Below are positions 399-9,297 of a DNA stretch of 64,000 nucleotides, in pieces. Numbering within the stretch: the stretch's first letter is position 1; every line of letters begins with the position of its first letter. This DNA is from Oculina patagonica (lineage: Eukaryota). The translations under genes and the position numbers were made by a program. Where the stretch lies: contig NC_135763.1 of assembly GCF_052425735.1 (NCBI RefSeq), forward strand, positions 15,128,001-15,192,000, written 5' to 3'. Below the pieces are notes generated by a model that did no database searches, was not told where the DNA came from, and worked only from the letters and a program-made list of their open reading frames with translations.

Positions 399-2290
399 AT
401 GGCTGCGGAGTGCTATCAGGAAAGTTCCCTTAGTGTACAAATGGAAAGCGGTAAACTGTTCATACGAACGGACGTGATACCACAACCTGGAGACGCCATC
501 TTGGATTTAGGCTGTGGTACCGGTGAGCTATCTGCGTACATTGCTGAGCTCGTAGGACCGAAGGGATATGTTGTTGGCGTCGATCCTGACATGAATCGAC
601 TTCAATTGGCTCGAGAAGCTCATAATGGGGTGAAAAACCTCTCTTTTGCCAAAGGGAATTCAGATAACTTCGAAGGTATGGGCTCTGAAAAGTACGACAT
701 AATTTTCCTGAATCATGTGTTTCACTGGATTCCAAACAAGCACCAGGCGCTGAAAAACATATTCAGCAGTTTAAAAACAGGCGGAAAAATTGCCATGCAA
801 TACGCGGACGCCTTGTCTCCCTTTGAAGAGAGCGTGATGGACGAGTTAAACCCTGAGACTAAAGAACAAATTACGATGACCTTTCACGGTATTGGGCAGT
901 GGCGTAGCCAGGGGAGGGTTCCAGGGGTTCCGGAACCCCCCCTTCGGGATATCGCAATAGCTAATTCAAGAGAAAAAATATTATTAGAACCCCCCTTTAA
1001 TTCCGCCAGATTAGAAAAATGAAATTTTTGAGAAAATAAAATGAAATCTATAAAGTATCACCTTGTGTTTACAATTACAAAATTTCAACATGGCTACCAC
1101 CACAGCGAGAAAAGCAGACATCGAGCCCTCTATGCCACGCGTTGTTGGTCGGCAACAGCACCGAAGCAATGTTGAAGCAGAATCACCCAAGGAGTACTAC
1201 AAAAGAGCGCTTACAATTCCTCTGCTAGATCACCTTATCTCTGAGATGGATTTATACTTCGACCCAAACAATGATGCTGTGATGTCTTCCCTCCTGTACG
1301 TACTACCAGCCTTGCTTGTTTCTCAAAAAGGAAACCCTGTGCAAGCTGCCATCCAGTACTATGCAGATGATCTACCATCACCCCAAGTTGCAGATGTGGA
1401 GCTTGCCTGTTGGCGGCGAAAGTGGCTAAGTGCGGATTAAGACCTACCAAAAAGTGCAGTTCAGGCCTTGGCAGAATGTGACAGCGATTTTTATCCAAAT
1501 GTGCACAAGTTGCTGCGCATCTTGTGTACGTTGCCAATTACTTCTGCAGAATGTGAGCGATCGTTCAGCACATTGCGCAGACTAAAGACATACCTGCGGG
1601 TTACAATGACCAGCGAGCGAGAGTCAGGACTTGCTCTTATGAACATACATTACAACAGACAAATTGACATTAGTGCAACAGTCGACATTTTTGCACGGAA
1701 GCATCCACGGCGCCTACTTCTGGCTGATATACTAGCTGACTAGTGAGTGACGGTACGCCGGGAGTGAATGGTACGCCGGAAAAATTACCTGATACGCGGG
1801 ATTTTGAGCTTCCCTTCTAAGAAATACTAGCTTCAATTGACGCTAAAATTGCTAAAAATTTATGCTTAGAATCAAGGAGATGCCATTTCTGGGGACCGCA
1901 AATTTCGGACCCCTCTAGAGGAGGGGCGCCTCCGGCGCTCAGTTTTACCTTCACAATTACAATTCACATTTGGAACCCCCCTATACAAAAATCCTGGCTA
2001 CGAGGGTAGATGTGGATCGCTTGTGCGTGACAGTCGGATTTGACGTCTTAAAAAGCTACTACAGCAATGACGACACGCTTGTATTTCAAAGTCTTGAGGA
2101 TCTTCTGAAGTGGTTTTGGTCATCTTCACACGGAGTGTTTGATCTACAACTTGTAACACAAGAAAGAATACAACGGTTTTTAAGTAGGGTTGGAAATCCA
2201 CCCTTCGACTTCTCAGCGGGTTCTGTTGATAGTAGGCTAGTTGCTGTGAAACCAAAAGACTATGTCAATGCCATGAATAAACCGCTCTGA
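399..2290 (+). pseudogene. Intronless class I SAM-dependent methyltransferase interrupted by a hAT insertion (CDS parts 399-896 and 2003-2290; 261 aa if rejoined)
   Basis: Motif I ILDLGCGTG, plus VGVD and YDIIF..HVFHW. Removing 897-2002 gives a continuous frame ...TFHGIG|RVDVDRLC...KPL*. Confidence 0.85.
897..2002 (+). mobile_element. Internally deleted, non-autonomous hAT DNA transposon (THAP12/ZMYM1-like transposase C-terminus)
   Basis: Left TIR CAGTGGCGTAGCCAGG (897-912); partial right TIR CCTGGCTACG (1993-2002). ORFs 1063-1440 and 1468-1743 are in one frame separated by TAA and encode the hAT dimerization motif (LPITSAECERSFSTLRRLKTYLR). Confidence 0.9.
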
Positions 2291-2346
2291 ACATTGGTAA
2301 TTTTAATCAATTGATCAAAACCCTGAAGCTGGTAATATAAACTTAC

Positions 2347-2992
2347 CACTTTCTAAAGGGGTTACTGTGTTTTATTTGTTTGTCCTGGTTACAAAGGAAT
2401 ATGTGAGTATAAATTTTAAATCAATATGGATTTTTCGATTTCATATTTGACAGATGGTTCGTCGTTCGCAGATTTCCGAGAAAAATGCGGATATAACTTA
2501 AAATCTACCCGATCATATTAAAGTTGTGGCAGGCTGGTATTATGCCTTGAAATTCCCGATCATGAAGGTTTCAAGTTAATATGCGACCTTTCGATCAAGT
2601 CTTCTATCAAAAACAACAGTCCGAGCAGTTTTTATATTCGAGGACTGTACTAAATTAAATGCAACAACACGCCACGGCAAGAAATACATTACTGCCTTTC
2701 CCTCTTGTATTAAATTTGATGGAATATCATACTGAATATAAAAATCTAATAATATAACAATAAAAATGATATACTATAAACAGAAATCGACTTGCTACGG
2801 TGCTGCTTTGTTATAAAGAGCAATGAATAGCGTCTAGCTTTCAAGAACGTTATTCAAAAGGGATGAAAGTACGCAAACCATCCACAAATGTTGTTGTACG
2901 TGATTTACTCACATGTTGTGCGGTCTTTTGCTCTTGCGGGTGTTTTTACTGAACAGGTTTACTTTACAAAACGGACTGCAGCAGTTTCCCAT
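2347..2992 (-). CDS. Putative 5' exons of a gene starting MGNCCS (predicted myristoylation/palmitoylation); exons 2992-2913, 2603-2588(?), 2384-2347; continues leftwards
   Basis: ATG GGA AAC TGC TGC AGT; donor AT|GTGAGT after 2913; 38-nt exon flanked by TTTGTAACCAG and GTAAGT. A 16-nt microexon with a weak donor is needed to keep the frame. N-terminus resembles the gene at 8364. Confidence 0.35.
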
Positions 2993-4222
2993 CTTGACGA
3001 ATTTGATGTTCAGGATATGCAGTAGTGTAGCAGCTCTTGTAAGCTTCTAATGAAGCGTTCAAGCGTGGTTCTCCTCACTCCACAAACTTATAAATGCATT
3101 ACGGAAAGACTATGGCGGAAATAAATATGTAAATCATCAGGACCCAAACTAAATCAGAGGCCGGAGGCCAGTTCATCATCGAAACCTTCAGACCTCCCCC
3201 CTCAGTGGTCGCGTCGGAAAGAACACAACCACTGCCAGTTAGGCAGACATGATGAGGGATTAGAGGCCCAGAGTTTCTATGCTGCTCGGGAGGCATATAT
3301 CCCCTTATGTTCGGAATACATGTTTCTTTGATTACCATTATAAACTAGACGTATTAACAAACCCTGCCAATGGTCTCCATTCTCCTGGTGACCACGTGAC
3401 ACACTCTGGGAGATGTCAGGGGCATGCATGTTTTTTTCCCGACAATTTTACAGATTCACGTTATTATAAAAGCCCTCTACACTTTTAGGTTATCTTTAAC
3501 AAATTTGATAGATCTAAAAACAAGCAGCAGATTTCATTTTTTTCTAATTCCGGATTTTTCTAAACATTAAGATAGTAAATGTTTTTAGACAAGTATGATA
3601 CAGACTTTGCAAGGCAGGCCTTTACGGTTCTGTTGGCTACAAGTAGTATAAGTAGTATATTATACAAATATTAAATATATATAGTTATCACTTACCAAGA
3701 GCATATTGGCCCAACTTTTTGTTTTTAATTTTTTTCACTGGGATTACGGCAATGTCGATATCTTACATGGTAACAGCCCCACTGGCCTCCCCCCCAATCA
3801 ATGTTGCTATGAATTGGCGAACACTAAAATGAACTGTAATCTTTCGTTAATTGTCTCAACAGTTTTGACCGGGGTTGAAGGTCTTGACAGTACGGATCGA
3901 GGACAGATATTCACCTATAAATGACTGAAAAAGATTTGTATGGATGTTAAAGGAAAGTTGAAAGGATAAGGGGATTCTGAACGAGATTCTGAACGTGGAG
4001 CCAACGGGTGTTTCGGTCGTAAAAAAAGAATGTCCTAACGTTGTTGAACAAACCAATTAAAAATTACGAGAGGGTCTTTCATGCGAATCAAGTTTAATTG
4101 TTAGATTGCATCAGTGCGGGATCTTTCGGGACAATACCCGGTCCAATACTTAGAAAATATTTGACCGGCAATGGAGCAATCTGATTGGCTGATTTTAGTA
4201 ACTGGCCCTCTTAGCTGTCTTA

Positions 4223-4644
4223 AGGCCATGTTACACGGCGCCATTTTTCCTGCAACTTGCAACGCAACAAACGTTGCGTTGCAAGTTGCAGGAAAAAAAT
4301 TGCACGTGTATCATCCCATTTTCGCAACCTGCAATGCAACAAATTGTAACGTTGCAAGTTGCAGAAAAAGTTGAACTATCCTCTACTTTTCGCAACGTTG
4401 CGAGAAAAGTTGCTGCGTGTAACGTATCAAGCGCAACCTGCAACGCGTTTGTGTTGTAATCAGCCAATGATAGCACTTAGAGCCAATCGTTACCGCTGAG
4501 ATTTTAACTATTCAGCGGGTGCATTGCAAGTTACAAACCAAAAATTGCGCTGGTGTGACACCTCCTCTGCAACTTGCAATGTTTTTGTAGTCGTCGTCGT
4601 AGCGTTGCAAGTTGCAGGAAAAACTGTTTCGTGTAACATGGCCT
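4223..4644. mobile_element. PIF/Harbinger-type MITE
   Basis: TIRs AGGCCATGTTACACG...CGTGTAACATGGCCT, TTA on both flanks, internal TGCAAC/GTTGCA repeats. Confidence 0.85.
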
Positions 4645-5352
4645 TTAGTCGTAATAAAGTTCCATTCTGGTAGTGGATTATTATTTGTTGTGACAATTGC
4701 TAAGTGTCTGCACTGGAGGAACAAAAAAGCTCAGGAACTCGATGTAAACTGTTTATTATATACGTGTTCAAAGCAACATCCTAACCTAACGGATCCTTAC
4801 ATAATTATGGTGTCTTAAAATTGGCATCTAAAAACGGCATCCACTTTACTACCCACCACAGTCAAAAACATGGTTTCAAAATCACAGCAAACATCCTTCT
4901 ATCAATTTATTTACATTTATACTCTCCTTGCGTTACGAGCTTTGCCGCTAAAATACAGTACTTGGGTTCCATATGGTTTGAGAACTAGTTCAGTCAACGT
5001 TCAATTCCCTCTATCAGACGCGCCTGTAGGGTTCATGGTATTTGTATTCAACTTTGCAAAGTCTTGGCTGTTTTTGTTAAAACAACTACCTTAATTAGAT
5101 GCAAAAGCGTTTCATAGAAGAAACTGATTATTGGCAGAGACCCTTATGGATTTCTGGTATCGGTGACACATTCCTTAATATTTGACTACAAAACTGTTTA
5201 TTTTCTTTGCTAATGTTTTTGAACGGACTCTGTACAATAGAAGTACTTTTTTGATAAGCAGAGCAGCAACTATTAAACAAAAACTTAAAACCACAAGGGT
5301 ATAGTAACCGAGCAACTTTTTCCAGAACTTCACGAGTTGAAATTATGATCTG

Positions 5353-8300
5353 CTAGTACAAGAAACGATCCCAGTGGCTTTTCTGTTGCTCGCGAGGAGT
5401 ATCCGTGATCATGCCTTGGTTTGTACGCCCCTCTTGGGCATTATTTACAATCGCTTTGAGCTCTTCAAGGACCCTGTCATCTCTAGAATAATAGTTAAAT
5501 TCCGTTCGCTGATACTTGACATTCAATTTAAGAGGAGGCGGATATTTCACATCGTAGCACCTGCAAAAGATCCGAAGAAAGTCTTATAGAAGAATTGTCA
5601 CTGAATTTTATCGTGAGACAATACACACTGTTCTGTACCCTTTCAGGCAGGAATACCCAAGTATCATGTCAGTTTACAATCCCGGCAGAAAGTGAACAAT
5701 ACATAAGCAGCAAACTTCTTGTCACTCATGTTATGATACGTTTAATGCCATTATCTTGACTATGTAACGCTTTTGGACTCTGATAACGATATGAGGCAAT
5801 TTCAAAATAGGCAATTTAAACACGTACTCTGTACAAAACAAGCAAGCTGATTTTACACTAGAGACGGACAAATCGTCTAAGACGGATAAGTCGTCTCAGT
5901 GTGTAAACGGGACGAACACATCTGATCGCTAGCTTTTTTTGATGCGAGTGGATTAAACCATAGAATGACTGATTAATTGATTGAAGAGTTTGAAGAATGA
6001 CACATTGCATGAATCGGGTATTTCCGGCGCGCAAAATGTTAGTGCGAGGGCCGGCGACAACAACTATGTAAATTATCTTTGCGGGAAAATCGCGGACAAT
6101 CCAGGCTGGGAAAGATAGGCCCATCTTGCCCGCTTGGGTACTCAATCCCAACATAGGGTTTAGCTCATCTTGGCAGCTCTCGCGGAGTCACCCGAGTCAG
6201 GAAAAGCTGAAAACTGATTTAAATGAGGACTAATCATACACCTACTCTGTGCAATAAATTCCTTGGCCACGGTGACGATCAACGTCGCGGAAACATTCGC
6301 AACATTTCCCTGTCTTTAAACTATAGCATCTGACGATAAAGAAAAACAAAAAATTTAAATATTTACATTGTTGCTAATAGAACTTTTAGTCATATTCGAC
6401 CTAATTCCTGTATGGAATTTGCATACCACATAAGTGTTTATGTATAAATAAAGCACTAATCATTCAGAACATAACATTATATACATGTACAGTATTGCCT
6501 TATCCAAACATATTAATTTTTTACCAAAAGTAAACATTTATAATCAATTTTGAAACTAAGAACCTGTTTCCACATTTTAGGCTTAATAGGTTCTTATAAA
6601 GAGGGGGTCTAATTTGCAAATTTTAACCTTACAGGTTCTTACTCGCGGGTTTTTACTGTATATGGTTTTACTTATAATCCCATTTTAAAAACTCACTCTC
6701 ACTTTATTTTGGCGGGAATTAATTTTAAGTGGTAGTCGAGTGCTTGCATTAAAATGTAGCGTGATTTGACAGCCGTAAAATTTGTCAACGCCTCCACGAG
6801 ATCTTTTTCAAACTTTTCCTATTGGCTTTTTTAACTAACAAGAAACTTAATTACTTACGAACGAAATTACTCTTCTGAGCTAGGCTGAAATTAAACTTAA
6901 TATTATAGCTTATCTTTGTGAAATATTTCAACTAAAGTTGTCCGACGTTTCGATGTAAACTGTTGATTATACGATATATATGTGAACACCCAAATAACCG
7001 ATGTGAGGCAGATGCTCCTATATTAAATCTGTTTAAAATAAACTATTAACGCATAGAGAGAAGAGGCCATGTCGTGGATGACTTACATTAAAATTTGCTT
7101 GGGTTACTTTAGCGCAAATGCAAATGCAAATATTGAAAGCGCAAATGCAATTATTGAAGAACGTTGGCACTGCAGCTTTGCAATCCAAAATCGTCCTAAA
7201 TTTGGTAGATTAGCCGTTAAAACTCTCATTGCTGCCTTGTTGATCATTTATCCTTACCTGGCTTAATACCATTTTAGGCCGGGGTCAGAGATTTTTACCA
7301 GCGAAATGGCCAGTTCAAATTACTAATGCATCTGTTGCATCGAGTGTCCGGTTCTTAGAAATTAATTAACATGTAGAAGTTTGCTTTTCGTACACTTGGT
7401 GCATTGGCCTATATAGCCTGTGTGTGTGGCCGCACTACAAAATGATATTAAAGTACCCTTACAAAGACTGATGCTGCCGGAGCAAAGACTATTCTAGTTT
7501 CTAGTATCAATAGTTCGACGTTCACGATGCGTAAAATTTGATCGGCAGAAATATTAATGATGAAGGCAGGTAAAAATAGCACATTACTGACTGAGGTATT
7601 AAAGCCTTTTTGAATTGTAACTGAGTAAACAAAACAGCAAGACTATGAAATTCTCGGAAATGTTGCACAACTCAAGGAAATATAAGCTGGAAATTGTTTT
7701 CAATAAATCTTTCCCCTTGTATATTCCCTGCTACATGTAAGAAAGACTTGCAAGGCTAGAACAAAACATCTTCAAACTGAAGTAAAACAAACGTTTCCGC
7801 TAGAATCCAAGTGTTGAGCGAGGGTCAGGCTAACTTGACCATTTCGGAGAAATTTAACGCCGTTGTTTTTTAACTTTGTGTAAATTCGATTTCGTTCTTA
7901 GCAACTGACATAAGCACATGAAGCTCCATCTCGATCTGAGAATTCAGCAGAAAAAATGACGGTCAGCAGAGGGGTTGCGAATGGGTGTTTCGTGTACCTG
8001 CGGTACCCTATTTAACAGCGTAAGAAATATCCGATTTCGATTGCGAAACTTTCACGAGTCTCGAACGCCATTCAAAAATACAGTCGAGTTCCGAATTGAG
8101 TTTTCGCATCCTGACTTTCAGCCAAGTTACATTTATGGGGTTGACACTTCCAGGGGTCTTTTCTTTCGGAAATTCCCCGCTGGTGAGTAAACCACTCCAC
8201 GTAACGGCTTCTTTCTAAAGCACTAGTTGCGTCGGTCAGGTCAAAGGACAACAAATCTAATGGACATAAGAAGTGAGAAGCATTCGGCGATATACAAACC

Positions 8301-8364
8301 TGTTGCAGTACTTTCCGCTTTTAACACTCACTTTACAGTCACGATTACTGCATTTGTTTCCCAT
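5353..8364 (-). CDS. Small (118 aa) N-myristoylated Cys-rich protein with two C4 zinc-finger-like motifs; exons 8364-8300, 6329-6246, 5560-5353
   Basis: Canonical GT-AG introns, both phase 2, join to MGNKCSNRDCKVSVKSGKYCNRCYSLKTGKCCECFRDVDRHRGQGIYCTECYDVKYPPP...HWDRFLY*. Each junction falls inside a YCxxCY motif that exists only after splicing. Confidence 0.7.
6545..6658 (-). mobile_element. Truncated, diverged copy of the Tc1/mariner-type MITE at 8809-9297
   Basis: Reverse complement reads TACAGTAAAAACCCGCGAGTAAGAACC, matching the 8809 terminus. Confidence 0.7.
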
Positions 8365-8808
8365 GTTACCTTTTATCTTTAGATTCCGCTCCAAATTTTA
8401 CTCTCTCCTTTTAGCGGAATACCTTGTTGGCTGGTGTTTGTCTTAGAACTGGGTCGGTTTGGTGATCTGAATACTATATTTGCGTCACGTTACGTCACGT
8501 TTAAAATATGAGAGAAGATGTTTTCGTCTCCAAGGCTACCCGTATTTCATTCTTGTCCTCAGAGCTGCTCGTTTTTCAGATGTCGTTTTTGTTTTTGATT
8601 CCATAGTCGAGGTAGGTTACGAATGAAAATATCGACCTCCTGCCCGTTCCCCACGAAGAACGGAAAAGCCCTGTGAACGAAGTTTGAAAAAATATTAGCA
8701 AAAAACAGTTACAAGAAGAGAGGATGAAACGTACAGATTAGACCGAGAATAAAGTTTGAGGGCTTATTTGTAGTTTTTTTTAGAATATGATATTTCCAGA
8801 GGCAACTA

Positions 8809-9297
8809 CAGTAAAAACCCGCGTATAAGAACCTGTTAGGCTAAAATTTCATTTTTAAGCACCCTTCACATAAGAACCATTTTAGGCTAAAATTCTAAAA
8901 CAGGTTCTTATTTTCAAAAAAGAAAAAATAATCTTCTCAAAAATATAGAATTAAAAAATCTTTTCAAAAATATATTTATAACACAGTCTGTACACATTAT
9001 AGTTACAGCATAGTTACAAGATTTATTGGGAATTATAGTGAAGGTTACAATATAGTTTTGATTTTAACGGAATCAGATTAAAATAGTATAGTATTTTGCT
9101 TACAGAAGCCTTCAAGAATACTGTTATTGGACATTAAAGAGCAGATCATTTACAAATTCTACTTTATTTCTTGAACAAAAGTTAAGAACCTAATTAAGAA
9201 CGCAGTAGGCCTAATTTTACACTAAATACCATTTATATAAGAACCTGTTTAGGCTTACTTGAAAAAAACCTAGGTTCTTATACGCGGGTTTTCACTG
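8809..9297. mobile_element. Tc1/mariner (pogo-like) MITE
   Basis: TIRs CAGTAAAAACCCGCGTATAAGAACC / GGTTCTTATACGCGGGTTTTCACTG with TA on both sides. Confidence 0.85.

Follow-up and report, generated by a model that had tools for sequence, protein, structure and literature searches.

LOC144656719 of Oculina patagonica: a two-finger member of an undescribed stony-coral protein family with LIM-like fingers and a putative myristoylation signal

The window analysed here, a stretch of 64,000 nucleotides of Oculina patagonica DNA (contig NC_135763.1, positions 15,128,001 to 15,192,000 of the forward strand), carries on its minus strand the gene LOC144656719, whose features are described below by their positions within the window. 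Read and spliced by script, its three minus-strand exons give a coding sequence (CDS) of 357 nt including the TAG stop, which translates into 118 amino acids (aa), and this product is identical to P0001, the NCBI entry "uncharacterized protein LOC144656719 [Oculina patagonica]". A first-pass annotation of the same DNA had described a hidden three-exon, 118-aa gene with two phase-2 introns; the gene model is borne out by the splicing and by a spliced contig, and the word hidden has to be dropped, as NCBI already annotates the locus. LOC144656719 is a member of an undescribed family that is so far found only in stony corals.

The exon structure is collected in Table 1. Exon 1 encodes the MGNKCS start and the first finger (F1) as far as Y-C-N-(R), and exon 3 contains, in this order, the last ligand of the second finger (C51-Y; this finger is called F3 after its counterparts in the family), the YPPPL linker, a conserved VKY..EF.YYSRDD hairpin, a helix, a variable tail and the stop. 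The putative ligands of the first finger are spaced C5-x4-C10-x9-C20-x2-C23 and those of the second C31-x2-C34-x13-C48-x2-C51, with an additional ninth cysteine at C32. These spacings agree with those first reported apart from the second loop, which has 13 residues and not 12, and from C32. Both introns are in phase 2, and within a Y-C-x-x|C-Y knuckle each cuts the last codon that separates its cysteines (codons 22 and 50). The splice signals comprise the exon 1 donor 8300|GTTTGT, an exon 2 acceptor with a T-rich tract and CAG, the exon 2 donor 6246|GTAGGT, and the exon 3 acceptor TTTTGCAG directly before 5560. The ATG at 8364 is the first one of the transcript, none being present in the known 5' untranslated region (UTR; 8463-8365); it lies in the context AAC-ATG-G, with A at -3 and G at +4, and is preceded by an in-frame stop 11 codons upstream.

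Table 1. Coordinates of the parts of LOC144656719 (window positions) and of the cluster of its paralogs (chromosome positions)
Feature	Position	Strand	Description
Exon 1	8463..8300	-	5' UTR at least 8463-8365; CDS 8364-8300, 65 nt; GT donor after 8300, X1 contig
Intron 1	8299..6330	-	1970 nt, phase 2, GT..AG; X1 joint 6329/8300, CT..AC on the + strand
Exon 2	6329..6246	-	84 nt; last F1 ligand (C23-Y) and finger F3 to Y-C-T-(E)
Intron 2	6245..5561	-	685 nt, phase 2, GT..AG; joint 5558/6244, cut +2 = 5560/6246; X1 and X4
Exon 3, coding	5560..5353	-	208 nt; stop TAG 5355-5353
3' UTR	5352..5100	-	AATAAA at 5202-5197
Paralog cluster	G000:C6:15658600-15680712		LOC144656038 on +; LOC144656046 on -, about 11 kb; LOC144656043 on -, closest relative

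Contigs from four of 13 small public runs (three organisms, every run labelled RNA by guess) were compared with positions 5100-8560. A 344-nt contig of run X1 (organism A) aligns with 5465-5558, 6244-6329 and 8300-8463 with 0 mismatches, both introns being absent from it. Both junctions proposed in the first-pass annotation (8300/6329 and 6246/5560) are therefore found in X1, both with CT..AC ends on the + strand, and the second recurs in run X4, which comes from organism B, a related species with about 96% identity. Outside repeats the intron bins have zero contig depth, and in the genome the split copy is accompanied by a single paralog, 73% identical, and by no intron-less copy; for these reasons the X1 and X4 contigs must derive from spliced RNA. 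The competing AAA|GTGAGT donor near 8331, whose exclusive use had been named as the case contrary to the model, occurs in no contig, and its use would bring a stop right past the junction (ATG CTA TAG). Between its exon 2 part and the 5' UTR the X4 contig holds about 60 unplaced letters, a length that would fit a diverged exon 1 three codons longer and not an additional finger exon of 87-96 nt. At the other end of the gene, a 735-nt X1 contig covers 5100-5492 and extends beyond 5100; its 3' end would fall at about 4758, beside a second AATAAA at 4757-4752.

Run X1 also holds a short contig at 5454-5543, with 6 mismatches over 79 nt, which is deeper than the reference-like contig. Its five tabulated differences are all nonsynonymous (A86P, N72S, T69A, R68G and L62M), and the A86P, R68G and L62M states are the same in the related species and, at aligned positions, in the paralog LOC144656043. 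Because no such copy is present in the assembly, the contig is probably a divergent allele. Run X1 presumably comes from Oculina patagonica itself.

The family to which LOC144656719 belongs is small. A phmmer search with P0001 against 1.84 billion cluster representatives returned 18 proteins at E<=1e-3, and two profile searches of a 5.8-billion protein set gave 25 and 13 matches, which amounts to about 25-30 relatives among billions of proteins. The named matches all come from stony corals (Oculina, Desmophyllum pertusum, four species of Porites, Acropora millepora, Stylophora pistillata and three species of Pocillopora), so that the lineage restriction suspected in the first-pass annotation holds for each of them. 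Oculina itself has three more paralogs, LOC144656038, LOC144656043 and LOC144656046. Since these genera represent both major coral clades, the family is older than the split between the two. All the relatives are named uncharacterised or hypothetical in the databases, and no Pfam domain is precomputed or detectable in family members: hmmscan of nine of them at E<=10 gave nothing above noise, the best hit being zf-C2HC5 with 20.8 bits, under the cut-off, in the repeat-rich P0009. Literature searches by gene identifiers and for coral-restricted zinc-finger genes returned no paper on the family.

The members share a common plan: an MG(N/Q)xx(S/C) start, F1 (C4), F2 (C2HC), F3 (C4), PPP(L), a hairpin-plus-helix domain and a variable tail, with a number of fingers that ranges from two to six. 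The consensus of F1 is C-x2(4)-C-x9-12-Y-C-x2-C-Y, that of F2 F-P-x-C-x2-C-K-x-P-I...G-N-(Y/C)-H-K-x-P-C-Y and that of F3 T-G-K-C-C-E-C...G-x-Y-C-x2-C-Y, and the domain after PPP(L) reads V-K-Y..E-F..Y-S-R-D-D and continues into the helix. In an alignment of 20 relatives C23, C31, C32, C34 and C48 are kept in at least 90% of the proteins and C51 in 100%, and the 90-100% conservation of the ligand columns is what the gene as first proposed had led one to expect. From this pattern the cysteines would act as zinc-finger ligands.

The closest relative, LOC144656043 (P0035, 159 aa), is 59-64% identical to LOC144656719. Rebuilt from genomic DNA, it has three exons of 71, 87 and 84 nt ahead of the last one, and its three introns are all in phase 2 and all at the same Y-C-x-x|C-Y position. 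The rule in the family is therefore one symmetric exon per finger, the phase-2 introns falling within the second CxxC, and because the exons are symmetric and bounded in this way, fingers can be duplicated, lost or skipped in frame. All three events are met within the family. LOC144656038 (P0009), on the + strand, has four nearly identical F2 exons with a period of about 210 nt, which is direct evidence of tandem exon duplication. In isoform X2 of Porites lutea (P0022, 145 aa; NCBI) the F2 exon is skipped in frame with respect to P0004/P0020, joining F1 to F3, which suggests that finger number is also set by alternative splicing. As for loss, exon 2 of LOC144656719 shares 79% identity with the P0035 F3 exon, and in a maximum-likelihood tree built from the region common to the proteins, F3 plus tail, P0001 is sister to P0035 and P0002 (support 91/91), this group being nested in a 99/98 clade whose other members are three-finger proteins of Porites and Acropora. 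The branch of P0001 is about three times that of P0035 (0.20 vs 0.06). Searches of intron 1 by tblastn with the paralogs gave no F2 exon remnant and nothing above chance. Most likely, LOC144656719 is a diverged duplicate of LOC144656043, and its two-finger state arose by loss of the F2 exon after the gene duplication. The paralog cluster lies on the same chromosome at a distance of 0.53-0.54 Mb, LOC144656043 at 0.54 Mb. The earlier idea that the second finger arose by exon duplication is right as to the mechanism, as seen from the one-finger-per-exon rule and from LOC144656038, and fails for this particular pair of fingers, F1 and F3 being distinct, ancient types.

The N-terminal sequence M-G-N-K-C-S-N fits PROSITE pattern PS00008 (Gly2, a small uncharged residue 3, Ser6 and no Pro at 7), and it begins at the first AUG of the transcript contig, in agreement with the MGxxxS myristoylation consensus already pointed out in the first pass. 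The MG start is present in 15 of the 19 full-length members and the full PS00008 pattern in 11. Residues 1-26 have a net charge of +5, and an N-terminus of this kind would suit a membrane anchor made of myristate plus a basic patch.

A usable AlphaFold2 (AF2) model was obtained for P0035 with 24 relatives (mean predicted local distance difference test score (pLDDT) 70.8; fingers 78-89). Each modelled finger consists of a short hairpin, which bears the first knuckle, and of a helix whose start coincides with the second CxxC; the predicted arrangement is that of a treble clef. The tail is modelled as a hairpin (residues 91-105) and a helix (residues 110-128); the part of LOC144656719 first described as a helical-looking tail is predicted to contain a β-hairpin followed by a helix. 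Foldseek against the PDB gave no match below E 1e-3 (best 0.014), nearly all of the first 33 rows being LIM proteins (FHL1, Lhx3, PINCH, LMO4, FHL2, TES and CRP1), and against the AlphaFold DB clusters the named matches were all LIM proteins, with E values of 1.7e-4 to 6e-3. The LIM domains of CRP1/CRP2 also ranked first when the family profile was compared with PDB sequences (E 0.06-0.2). With a reference profile built from 19 canonical LIM domains of the Oculina genome, hhalign aligned F2+F3 of the family end to end (P 1.5e-4, probability 52%), against a lowest P of 1e-3 among 40 column shuffles; for P0001 alone only F3 was aligned, to the second LIM finger (P 0.0035). No LIM match was found when P0001 and eight relatives were scanned with PF00412 at E<=10, and a genome-wide search with this model, which gave at least 36 LIM matches at E<=1e-8, placed none at LOC144656719 or at the paralog cluster.

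Other comparisons were less informative. The C-terminal hairpin plus helix resembles the N-terminus of ZapA in the VIA structure comparison (Z 4.0, all values being Z<=4), a likeness set aside as a common motif. Searching the PDB with P0001 by phmmer gave matches at chance level only (Pcc1, E 0.32; CYLD B-box, E 1.6), Foldseek with the low-confidence P0001 model found no meaningful match, and a feature search of the ESM Atlas gave no score of 0.9 or more. Complex prediction of the C-terminal domain as a homodimer yielded a score of 0.02, which counts neither way.

Several further elements were observed in and around the gene. Intron 1 holds an interspersed repeat at about 6520-6665, with a second copy upstream at 8815-8860 in the opposite orientation and a core ...AAATTTTAGCCTAACAGGTTCTTA...CGCGGGTTTTTACTGTA. 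In bin 6608-6723 the summed contig depth is 2000-4500 in all four runs, with many loose ends at 6633 and 6660-6664; because of this depth and of the many different ends, the repeat is abundant, MITE-like (miniature inverted-repeat transposable element) or SINE-like (short interspersed nuclear element), and transcribed from many loci. A second repeat lies in intron 2 at about 5796-5911, where X1 depth reaches up to 1274 and the flanking intron has zero. An Rfam scan of 4300-9000 gave no match, repeat included. Just upstream of the contig 5' end at 8463, the minus strand at 8481-8500 shows a tandem ACGTGACGTA / ACGTGACGCA, with TGACG cores similar to cAMP response element (CRE)/ATF sites, followed by AAATATAG; these motifs may constitute the core promoter. 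Downstream of the gene, the minus strand at 4300-4650 is dense in short motifs of the GCAACTTGCAAC / TTGCAGGTTGCG type, a cluster that looks like a repeat or transposon remnant.

In the explanation that we favour, and to which we give somewhat better than an even chance as a whole, LOC144656719 is a transcribed and spliced gene of a coral family that encodes a myristoylated, membrane-tethered LIM-like zinc-finger adaptor. The three-finger gene LOC144656043 would have been duplicated, and one copy would have lost its middle C2HC finger exon and then evolved faster. In its product Met1 would be removed and Gly2 myristoylated, the lipid and the basic first finger would hold the protein at the membrane, and the two Zn(Cys4) fingers together with the C-terminal domain would serve as protein-binding modules, resulting in a small membrane-tethered adaptor. 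The gene, its splicing, the family, the conservation of the ligands and the exon logic are observed features on which this explanation builds. Zinc binding, lipidation and membrane location would come with it, as read from motifs and models, and the adaptor function at the membrane, taken by itself, is a tentative proposal with distinctly less than an even chance of being correct.

A number of points weigh against this explanation. Runs X1-X8 are labelled RNA by guess only. PS00008 is a permissive pattern, one subfamily starts with MSFLWGK/MTLIWGK and cannot be myristoylated, and Cys5, because it is needed as a zinc ligand, is not also available as a palmitoylation site. With 20 relatives, AF2 modelled P0001 poorly (mean pLDDT 58, about 42 in finger 1). 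The likeness to LIM is weak throughout: Foldseek E values lie between 1.7e-4 and 0.5, Z is <=4 and the template modelling (TM) score <=0.34, hhalign puts the probability at about 50%, and among the shuffles one reached P 1e-3. The C-terminal 66 codons have an omega of 0.90 against the paralog, and the tail may lack a fixed partner; in the contigs of related species, all ten listed CDS differences are nonsynonymous, although as many as 2 differences of the X4 contig are absent from the list.

The protein could instead be a soluble, non-lipidated cofactor of the LIM-only type (similar to CRP, LMO or FHL), acting at the cytoskeleton or in the nucleus, with an incidental MG start. This is rather unlikely in our estimation, even though LIM-only adaptors (CRP1/2, FHL1/2, LMO) come nearest in sequence and fold, the subfamily mentioned above has no MG start and eight of the 19 members fail PS00008: the MG start is kept in the large majority of full-length members and in both major coral clades, a Ser at position 6 and a small uncharged residue at position 3 are what N-myristoyltransferase prefers, and canonical LIM features are absent. 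A decaying or functionless duplicate, transcribed and drifting without a selected function, would account for the lost F2 exon, the threefold longer branch, the high omega of the tail and the differences between species, all ten of them nonsynonymous. Against it, the F3 exon has an omega of 0.18 in comparison with LOC144656043 and is, on this estimate, under purifying selection, and divergence in the tail stays below that in the adjacent 3' UTR (0.21 vs 0.32 in the paralog comparison). None of the ten differences affects a cysteine, the PPP motif or the YSRDD motif; the open reading frame is intact, the differences listed in two other species being substitutions only, with no CDS indel or stop; splice sites and start context are intact as well, and Porites splices the same F1+F3 form. 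Decay is accordingly judged quite improbable, and codon comparison points to fingers that are constrained and a tail that is weakly so. Positive selection is not established either, as the counts are compatible with neutrality (0 synonymous of 10, P about 0.11; Fisher tests against the UTR, P 0.07-0.46), the omega of the tail stays at the value given above and its divergence lies below that of the UTR. The two remaining alternatives are both very improbable. An A20-type, ubiquitin-binding zinc-finger adaptor, as suggested in the first-pass annotation, is favoured by nothing but finger 1, whose C-x4-C-x(9)-C-x2-C spacing is roughly similar; zf-A20 (PF01754) has no match at E<=10 in nine members, the loop, x9 in this protein and variable (9-12) among its relatives, departs from the x11 of A20 fingers (C-x2-4-C-x11-C-x2-C), and neither fold nor PDB sequence searches returned such a finger, so that the suggestion is abandoned. 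A small metal-buffering protein similar to metallothioneins would be in line with nine cysteines in 118 aa, and is opposed by their placement in regular paired knuckles, by conserved aromatic and Gly positions, by the predicted secondary structure and by the fact that over half of the protein is a conserved Cys-free domain.

For LOC144656719 the present analysis confirms the automatic annotation and adds a family, an architecture and testable predictions (two Zn per chain and myristoylation of Gly2). No Pfam model exists for the family, and a definition of its finger and tail domains can be derived from the present alignments. The family also shows cleanly how symmetric phase-2 exons let the number of domains evolve, with duplication, loss and skipping in one family. 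A gene that only stony corals have is a candidate for the traits that set them apart, and descriptions of intracellular ones are few. A broader proposal, which we regard as unlikely, is that the family arose in stony corals as a membrane-anchored adaptor derived from LIM, with a valency of two to six fingers that is tuned by exon duplication, loss and skipping and with a fast-changing tail that tracks a lineage-specific partner; if true, this might tie it to coral-specific biology such as signalling in calcifying or symbiont-hosting cells. The value of these findings is moderate and lies in a useful family definition and in exon-level domain evolution, not in a new kind of system.

Proteins of the Src/MARCKS type bind membranes by means of myristate plus a basic patch. 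LOC144656719 resembles them in its M-G-x-x-x-S start at the first AUG followed by a basic stretch, and differs in that this stretch is itself a putative zinc finger and that lipidation is here proposed from the motif. SCRiPs are coral-restricted, secreted proteins with a signal peptide and the pattern Cx6-7Cx4-6CPx3-6Cx4-6Cx5-6CCC (PMC2652719). Like the family of LOC144656719 they are small, Cys-rich and restricted to reef-building corals, whereas the latter has no hydrophobic leader, a polar basic N-terminus and paired CxxC knuckles; with both the signal peptide and the SCRiP cysteine pattern absent, membership was rejected and the two are considered unrelated. With the A20 finger there is a likeness in the single C4 finger and in a similar order of ligands.

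The closest comparison is with LIM domains, the half-domains of which had been mentioned in the first-pass annotation. Several defining features differ. LOC144656719 is C4 + C4 and has no C2HC finger, whereas the ligand set of the LIM test is C2HC + C2C(C/H/D); the spacer between fingers is of 2 residues in LIM and of 7 here (C23 to C31; 7-8 in the family); the loops have 16-23 residues in LIM, 9 and 13 here and 9-14 in the family; the histidine finger is H-x2-C in LIM and H-x3-C in F2; and neither the MG start nor the C-terminal domain is a LIM feature. Because Pfam score, spacer, loop lengths and H-x3-C all fail the LIM definition, the fingers are not called LIM domains, and of the earlier remark the resemblance remains, as the best lead of the profile and fold searches. 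The C2HC + C4 ligands of LIM are reproduced by F2+F3 of the three-finger relatives, together with C-x2-C-K-x-P-I and G-x-Y-C-x-x-C-Y. Tandem treble-clef fingers, as predicted here, are common to the family and to the LIM-only proteins (CRP/CSRP, FHL), among which FHL also has an extra N-terminal C4 'half-LIM'. By alignment and by model, the fingers of this coral family appear LIM-like and are possibly LIM-derived.

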